From the NCBI GenBank assembly GCA_028534125.1, contig CM052851.1, forward strand, positions 31,682,001 through 31,746,000: a DNA stretch of 64,000 bases. Reading direction: 5' to 3'. Below, piece by piece: positions 61,455 to 63,594 of this stretch; the first letter of the stretch is position 1; each line of letters begins with the position of its first letter. The translations under genes and the position numbers were made by a program. The notes beneath the pieces are model-generated. The model saw nothing but the letters and a program-made list of their open reading frames with translations. It made no database searches and was not told where the DNA came from. Origin of the DNA: Lama glama (lineage: Eukaryota).

Positions 61455-63594
61455 GTGAGTGCCCATGCCTGCTGTCACCATGACGACCATTCACCACAAG
61501 CAGATGCTGCGGAACACATGTCCATGGAGTTCTCCAGCTCCACCACCCATGTGCAGACCTTCTCCCAGACAATCAAGATCATGAGAGGCAAGTAGAGTGG
61601 AGGAGGGGTCAGGAATCAGGTAAAGGCAGCCTGTCTTCCTCCAGTCTTTATACCTATTGAGCCCCTCAGGAGCCCAGGATACCACCAGCAACCCTTCCCA
61701 ACCTGTGCTTCTAATCTGTGCTTCAGTAAAGCTTAGCCAGCTGGATGCTCATTCACTGATCTGATCTCCAGGGAAACAGCTTAGGAAAAATCGATTGCAT
61801 GGTGTGTGTGAGTGATTAATGACCTCTTAATTGCTTAGGGAGATCAGAGCCATAGGCAAATGCCCAAATCTCCAATGGTAGAATTTCAGGCATGGAGGAA
61901 GTTGGGAGGTAGCAACCTTATCTACCTCTGTATCTACCTCTGAGTAATAATGCTGGCCCTGCTCCACTTAAGAAAAAGGAGACTTGGAGCTGCCAGTGGA
62001 GAGAAGATGAACACATGAACAAGTGACTTGAGCCTCCAGGCTCTCAGCCTTTGGGGACCAGACTTAGGGGAGGGCAGATCCAAGGGAAAGCTGAGAAGTG
62101 GTCCCAGAGCAGAACAGATTGTTTTGATCATGTCTCTAGAGGAAAGAGATTAAAAGATGGCCAGGGACCAGGACATTGAATACCCATCCTCCTTGCCCTT
62201 CGTTCAGAATCCTCTGTGACAGAGGTCAAGGCCAGATAAACACTCTATGCCAATTCCTCCTGGTCAGTGAGGCAGAGGAAGTGGAACACTTGGGACTTAA
62301 GACCAGAAGTTGCAAACTCAAGTGATTATAGCAATAATTCGCAGCCCTGACTGTGGCCCAGAGACATCTTAGTGTAGGGATCGGGGGAGAGAGGAGTGAA
62401 AAAAATAGTGGTACAGGAGTCTCACCTCAGACGGTTAAATCAGGTGGGTGTGTTTTTAAAAAGCTCTCCAGGGATCCTAATGTGTAGCTGGATTTGAAAA
62501 TCACTGGCCAACAGTGCCCAGGCAGGGAACATAAATGCAGGAAAAAGGCTAAGGTGCACTGGGGAGGATGTAGCCCATTTAAAGGGGCAGCTACTATTCA
62601 CCTCCCACTGATTGTTGCCATGTGGGAATAGGAGTCCAGTGTTAAGAATCCCAAAGTCTGAACTTTTATGTGAAATCTCTCGATTTTTAGATGTCAGGCT
62701 ACATTTTGTTTAAACATTGTAAAGGTCAGATGAAAAATCATCTGGAAATCGGCTGCAGTCTGCACACTGCATATTTGAAACTTATGATCTCTATTTAATG
62801 CTACCTGGGGCTAGATCTTCTAGGAAAGACACCCAAGAAACCAATAAAATTCCCAGAAAAGTTTCCTTCTGAAAAAAGAGAAAAGTAGAACTCAAGGCCT
62901 GGACCCAATAAAGGTGATTGGCCATTGAGGGGTGGTGGGAAGTTGGCTCCCCTAGTGATTGAAGCTTGCCATAACACACTGACCCACCGACTCTAATGTC
63001 CCTTCTTGGCCAAAGCCGGTCCTGCCCGGGCTGACTTAAATGCTCCACCATCCCCTCAAGAAAAGGTCAGCCCACCAATCCCGGGTTAAGCTCCGCCTGG
63101 CCCATTCTGACCTTCGCCTGCCGCCACTGAGGAAGTCGTGACGAGGAGGTCCTCGAGCTCTTCAGAGTTCTTCAGCTTGGTGACCCGGAGTTCCAACATC
63201 CTTGCGGGTGAAAGCATCCCGGATTTCGTGGAGAAGCCTCACCTGGTCACTGCGCCCAAGGGTGCGTCGCTCCCCATGTCTCCCCAGGCCCCTGGGTGCT
63301 TCCTTTTCTTCCTCAATGCCCCAGCCGCTGCCACACACACCCCCACCACCATCATTGTCCCCCCAGCACACAATCACTGGCGGATCCCGAACAAAGGTCC
63401 CTCCCCTGCCCGGGGATGGGAGCAGGCAAAAGATGCAGCTTGGAGACTAAGAGGCAAAAATGGATCCTGTGCCCTCTGCAAGAGATAAAGCCGTGTTCCA
63501 AGCCCAGGTGCAGGGGGACCCCAAACCCAACATCCCCATCAAGGAGTCTGCCAAGATATTCTACGACAGCGTTAACAAGGAATACGTACTGAAG
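61455..63594 (+). pseudogene. IGSF22: IGSF22 (immunoglobulin superfamily member 22) 5' exons, apparently inactivated; continues beyond the window
   Basis: Exon 61455-61587 (ATG 61480: MTTIHHKQML, then shifted frame EHMSMEFSSSTTHVQTFSQTIKIM); exon 63130-63261 ([43 protein letters not shown]); exon 63482-63594 ([37 protein letters not shown]). These match the IGSF22 N-terminus and the known PTPN5-IGSF22 synteny. Multiple lesions are listed in findings. Confidence 0.85.

Follow-up and report, generated by a model that had tools for sequence, protein, structure and literature searches.

Inactivating lesions in the first three coding exons of llama IGSF22 suggest a unitary pseudogene in a camelid lineage

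Results

PTPN5 and IGSF22 at the locus

The window, by which the whole analyzed stretch of 64,000 nucleotides is meant, contains on its plus strand the 3′ exons of PTPN5 (STEP) at 49775–57800. These exons encode the protein tyrosine phosphatase motifs NRYK, FWRMVW, CTEYWP and WPDQKTPD, and the last of them ends with QSPE followed by a stop codon. The exon at 56839–56979 matched PTPN5 structures with an E-value of 2e-27, compared to 2e-12 for PTPRR, the next phosphatase. Four runs of N were found in the window (9408–9633, 36063–36202, 57052–57207, and 58631–58770), the third of which covers the place where the exon for the catalytic HC(X)5R motif of PTPN5 is expected. Given this masked part, the original description of PTPN5 as intact would be provisional.

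About 3.7 kb downstream of the PTPN5 exons and on the same strand, the segment at 61455–63594 is identified here as the first three coding exons of a candidate single-copy ortholog of IGSF22. The peptide encoded by exon 2 (63132–63263) was searched against 1.84 billion representative proteins and matched IGSF22 with a best E-value of 6e-13 and 80% identity. The identities between the exon-2 translation and IGSF22 proteins ranged from 55 to 80%. The named full-length relatives reached with this peptide, which ranged from sharks to primates, were all IGSF22 and included no other Ig/FN3 protein. Moreover, exons 2 and 3 aligned unambiguously, column by column, with 26 IGSF22 N-termini of mammals and reptiles, and 63 of their 81 residues were identical to dolphin IGSF22. 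Thus, the gene is IGSF22 and it lies in syntenic position after PTPN5 (exons at 49.8–57.8 kb, plus strand), as the original prediction had stated on both counts. In human, too, IGSF22 comes next after PTPN5 in the same orientation. Pfam returned no match for the single exon peptides, which are too short, and a camelid-specific 26-mer from exon 2 had no match in a metagenome scan.

IGSF22 is found from sharks onward. Members of the family begin with an N-terminal I-set Ig domain, after which come a tri-helix bundle as in MyBP-C and then Ig and FN3 repeats. The identities between full-length dolphin IGSF22 and those of intact mammals ranged from 87 to 91%, and the dolphin and marsupial proteins were about 87% identical. 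Similar to the window, intact IGSF22 genes, for instance that of Tursiops truncatus (XP_033718507.1, 1325 amino acid residues), share the position after PTPN5 and the exon phases. Different from dolphin IGSF22, however, the window has a frameshift at codon 11, has lost the acceptors of both exon 2 and exon 3 and lacks the residues ISWKRESG. These are the four lesions that had been predicted, namely a frameshift, two dead acceptors and a deletion in the core of the Ig domain, and all of them were confirmed base by base against the 26 ortholog N-termini.

Exon 1

The first coding exon is at 61455–61587 on the plus strand, with its AG acceptor at 61453–61454. The ancestral ATG is at 61480, from which the N-terminus reads MTTIHHKQML, in agreement with the orthologs, and a further in-frame ATG is at 61465. 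One nucleotide of codon 11 (Gln) is deleted at 61510/61511, where the window reads CTGCGGAA at 61507–61514 and the orthologs have L-Q-E-H. Judged from the expected CAG, the missing base would lie outside any homopolymer run. The reading frame of the ATG at 61480 ends at the TGA at 61582–61584 after 34 codons in total, and the homologous frame picks up at about 61512, one base out of register (..EHMSMEFSSSTTHVQTFSQT..). A short (CA)n run is at 61358–61375, about 80 bases 5′ of the exon.

Counted from the in-frame ATG at 61465 or from that at 61480, the frame is 39 or 34 codons long, respectively, and it overlaps the conserved Met codons at 61518 and 61524. If exon 1 is still transcribed, this frame is an overlapping upstream ORF. 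According to the scanning model of Kozak, the ATG at 61480, which has an A at position −3, and its overlapping 34-codon frame should lower translation from the downstream ATGs.

Intron 1 begins with a GC donor at 61588–61589 on the plus strand, whose context, G|GCAAGT, is ideal for donors of this type. GC-AG introns with such a consensus get spliced. In addition, the sirenian gene models (Dugong and Trichechus) read into the start of intron 1 through a similar GGCAAGTGG (KIMGGKW..), which implies that the donor letters there are GGCAAGT, as in the window. The donor was considered as a further lesion and was dropped because of this context and the like letters implied in the sirenian models; it is probably functional and possibly old.

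Exon 2

The ancestral limits of coding exon 2 are 63130–63261 on the plus strand (132 nt, phase 1 to 1), with a GT donor at 63262–63263. Exon 1 ends in phase 1 and the orthologs read G-E-E-V-V across the junction of exons 1 and 2, which places the old start of exon 2 at 63130 and the ancestral acceptor at 63128–63129 (plus strand), where the letters are now TG. ORF-type calls from other mammals read ...T-E-E-V-V straight through this acceptor site. Neither an internal stop codon nor a frameshift interrupts exon 2 or exon 3 in its homologous frame.

Two cryptic AGs are found at 63130–63135 on the plus strand. Use of the first, GAG at 63130–63131 (+2 nt), costs 2 nt and shifts the frame, which then ends at the TGA at 63209–63211; checking of the acceptor letters and of the frame gave the same stop as originally predicted. 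Use of the second, AAG at 63134–63135 (+6 nt), keeps the frame at the cost of two Glu codons. Among closely spaced AGs, the preference at position −3 is CAG ~ UAG > AAG > GAG, and the in-frame AAG with its better −3 base may even beat the frameshifting GAG. Moreover, exon 2 with its 132 nt is symmetric, and its skipping would preserve the frame. A read-through ORF of 116 amino acid residues at 63138–63485 had no camelid counterpart and matched only ORF calls of two other mammals.

Exon 3

Coding exon 3 is at 63482–63594 on the plus strand and is followed by a GT donor at 63595–63596. Its length is 113 nt, compared to an expected 137 nt. The residues that it encodes belong to strands of the first I-set Ig domain, which covers residues 52–141 in the ortholog fragment P0002. 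Judged from exon 2, which ends in phase 1, and from the orthologs, which read P-E-G-D-K-A, the ancestral acceptor is at 63480–63481 (plus strand), where the letters are now AA. Similar to exon 2, two cryptic AGs are close by. With the AAG at 63481–63482 (+1 nt), the frame is shifted and ends at a stop codon at 63590–63592, and the GAG at 63483–63484 (+3 nt) keeps the frame with the loss of one codon. At this site, the frameshifting AAG is favored over the in-frame GAG, which it precedes and to which it is superior in its −3 base.

Thus, the original statement that none of the three exons can be spliced and translated normally was too strong. The in-frame cryptic AGs at 63134–63135 and 63483–63484 had been overlooked and, together with the conserved Met at 61518 and the GC donor of intron 1, they make up an open path across all three exons.

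The junction of an in-frame deletion of 24 nt is at 63531/63532 on the plus strand. The eight residues removed, ISWKRESG, include the core Trp of the Ig fold. In the orthologs, the block reads [IV]-[STA]-W-K-R-E-S-G, and all eight of its columns were filled in the 18 intact tetrapods compared, which ranged from alligator to primates. The part WKRESG was identical in 17 of these 18, with S in place of R as the single exception. The first Ig domain should unfold when it is deprived of its Trp-bearing strand. The Met in the KAMFR of ruminants and cetaceans is a Val in the window.

Word shares of the locus in sequencing runs

A total of 277 31-mers were sampled over 61300–64000, which is about one word per 10 bases, and were looked up in an index of sequencing runs. 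The chance that a given base was covered was close to 0.97, and about three words are lost per variant. Matches were found in 14 DNA runs from six studies with six organism labels. Four samples of one study contained 1.00 of the words, and the shares in the ten further DNA runs ranged from 0.96 to 0.99. At this sampling density, the runs at 0.99 can differ from the window at about one site only. In line with the original view, a one-off assembly error is unlikely, as judged from word shares rather than from a read pile-up. Moreover, all matching DNA runs come from near-identical relatives, which suggests that the animals sequenced belong to one camelid tribe.

Five RNA-seq runs contained 0.14–0.57 of the sampled words. 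Three of the five were labeled “reproductive system metagenome,” and the shares in the reproductive-tract samples were 0.51–0.57. Exons account for about 13% of the sampled stretch, and intron and intergenic sequence for about 87%. Shares of 0.28–0.57 in RNA runs exceed the exon share, so any RNA at the locus would be largely unspliced. The RNA signal points to unspliced transcription or to DNA carry-over.

Amino acid changes in the visible exons

The three exons in the window encode residues 1–126 of a protein of about 1325, which amounts to 9.5% of the coding sequence. All three are damaged, which is a small share of all exons of the gene and lies entirely within its first 10%. Of 52 columns without variation among 12 intact mammals, 7 were changed in the window, compared to 0–3 for single intact mammals in a leave-one-out count, which is biased against lineages with close relatives in the set. 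In the fairer test against cetaceans, invariant columns were changed at 10 of 57 in the window and at 3 of 57 in cetaceans, and this difference was not significant (p = 0.07). Similarly, relative-rate tests on the protein found 8–11 changes unique to the window and 5–8 unique to cetaceans (p = 0.2–1.0). The excess of amino acid change is therefore not significant, and the protein-level tests would be suggestive at most. Among the changes at invariant residues are two of P to L as well as E to K. Neither the 120 top-ranking relatives of the dolphin protein nor the 46 cluster members listed included a camelid IGSF22, which is weak support for a loss.

Discussion

As they stand, exons 1–3 have ceased to be a functional 5′ end for an ordinary IGSF22 mRNA. 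A ribosome starting at the ancestral ATG would halt after 34 codons. Exons 2 and 3, without their AG acceptors, could be joined only via cryptic AGs, of which one at each site would shift the frame, and the first Ig domain would be made without the strand that carries its core tryptophan. So many independent lesions in about 380 coding bases suggest neutral drift of these exons. Most simply, the entire IGSF22 gene would have turned into a unitary pseudogene that is no longer used in this camelid group, and we give this whole-gene reading a probability of about 0.6. In that case, RNA made at the locus would be unspliced or non-coding. Full loss of IGSF22 is likely, with the lesions all seen in the first tenth of the gene. 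For the unitary pseudogene that was originally proposed, the gene identity, the synteny and the lesions speak in favor; the extension to the whole gene is less secure, as the lesions cover only the first 9.5% of the coding sequence.

The position of the lesions matters for how they compare with established gene losses. Under the loss criteria of TOGA, inactivating mutations do not count if they fall within the first or the last 10% of the coding sequence, on the rationale that such terminal mutations are frequent in conserved genes, and a loss requires mutations in the middle 80% that affect at least two coding exons, or 20% of the exons in genes with more than 10 exons (bioRxiv 10.1101/2022.09.08.507143). 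In Old World camels, a study published in 2025 reported ten inactivated genes, including CES3, CPA3, PLA2G2F, TAS2R16, and KRT24 (PMC12127551). Similar to this set and to the losses called by TOGA, the window presents a candidate single-copy gene with conserved synteny, several independent lesions and an apparently working neighbor. Different from the window, where lesions are found only in the first 9.5%, however, these losses are based on mutations that fall in the middle 80%, affect two or more exons and are shared across species, one of them with experimental confirmation.

This position also lends some weight to the view that only the N-terminus was lost. Exons 1–3 would then have decayed, and a downstream start or promoter would yield a shortened IGSF22 that remains under selection and retains the remaining Ig and FN3 domains and the tri-helix bundle. 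Every lesion is inside the zone in which conserved genes most often bear such mutations, and shortened models are known, such as that of Ovis with 747 amino acid residues, which starts inside exon 3. The shortened ruminant models look degraded themselves, however, and since reptiles and mammals share a conserved N-terminus and first Ig domain, these parts are not normally dispensable. Moreover, no alternative start was seen within the window, where the Met of KAMFR has become Val. Overall, a shortened but functional IGSF22 is unlikely.

It is less probable still, and in our judgment quite doubtful, that the gene is coding through exons 1–3. Translation would have to start at the Met at 61518 or 61524 and splicing to use the cryptic AGs at 63134–63135 and 63483–63484, and the resulting protein would lack 13 residues at the N-terminus, two and one residues at the two junctions and the eight residues of the first Ig domain. 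Such a path is open in each exon, with the frames checked exon by exon rather than as a spliced model; exons 2 and 3 are free of internal stop codons when read in their homologous frames, and at exon 2 position −3 favors the in-frame AG (AAG versus GAG). However, three separate rescues would be needed at once. At exon 3 the order is reversed, with the frameshifting AAG at 63481–63482 both first and better placed in its −3 base than the in-frame GAG, and in exon 1 the upstream ATGs at 61465 and 61480 open the overlapping frame of 34–39 codons. Even the protein so made should have an unfolded first Ig domain after the loss of the Trp strand, and it carries alterations at invariant residues, such as P to L at two positions and E to K.

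That some or all of the lesions are errors of one assembly is very improbable: 1-base deletions are common among assembly errors, but the one in exon 1 would be outside a homopolymer run, the other lesions comprise two substitutions and a clean deletion of 24 nt, and the 14 DNA runs of six studies contain 0.96–1.00 of the sampled words, with 1.00 in four samples.

With regard to previous reports, IGSF22 is absent from the main text of the study on gene loss in Old World camels (PMC12127551), and no description of its loss was found in the papers searched that mention IGSF22. A study on foxes reported an amino acid substitution in IGSF22 and not a loss (PMC12274459). The lesions at this locus have probably been flagged already in public TOGA or RefSeq tables.

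Models of IGSF22 that look degraded, being labeled “LOW QUALITY PROTEIN” or truncated, were found in Dama dama, Ovis, Muntiacus, Dugong, Trichechus, Erethizon, and Thomomys. Similar to the window, these models have lesions in the N-terminal region. The lesions, however, are different ones, as far as can be judged from protein models, which were what was compared. The models of the ruminants (Dama dama, Ovis, and Muntiacus) are marked “LOW QUALITY” and are N-terminally truncated or garbled, and that of Ovis is without the Trp of the first Ig domain. In the sirenian models (Dugong and Trichechus), this Trp is replaced by C and by G. Ruminants retain the eight-residue block that is deleted in the window, and thus any loss in ruminants would be independent of that in camelids. 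From these protein models, it is conceivable, though on balance doubtful, that IGSF22 was lost independently in camelids, pecoran ruminants, sirenians, and some rodents.

A single camelid pseudogene alone would be an ordinary candidate for lineage-specific gene loss, and recurrent loss would be of more interest. IGSF22 ranks with the better conserved vertebrate Ig/FN3 proteins and its architecture recalls that of myosin-binding protein C; a search of the literature found no function for it. If the independent losses are true, convergent loss in lineages of large herbivores could hint at the role of IGSF22. Natural knock-outs in healthy species would show that IGSF22 is dispensable in some physiologies, and losses that track a trait, if they do, would provide the first functional clue to this protein. 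Finally, the models of Dugong, Trichechus, Erethizon (porcupine), and Thomomys (pocket gopher) carry the “LOW QUALITY” label or are odd, and that of Tamandua was noted alongside them.
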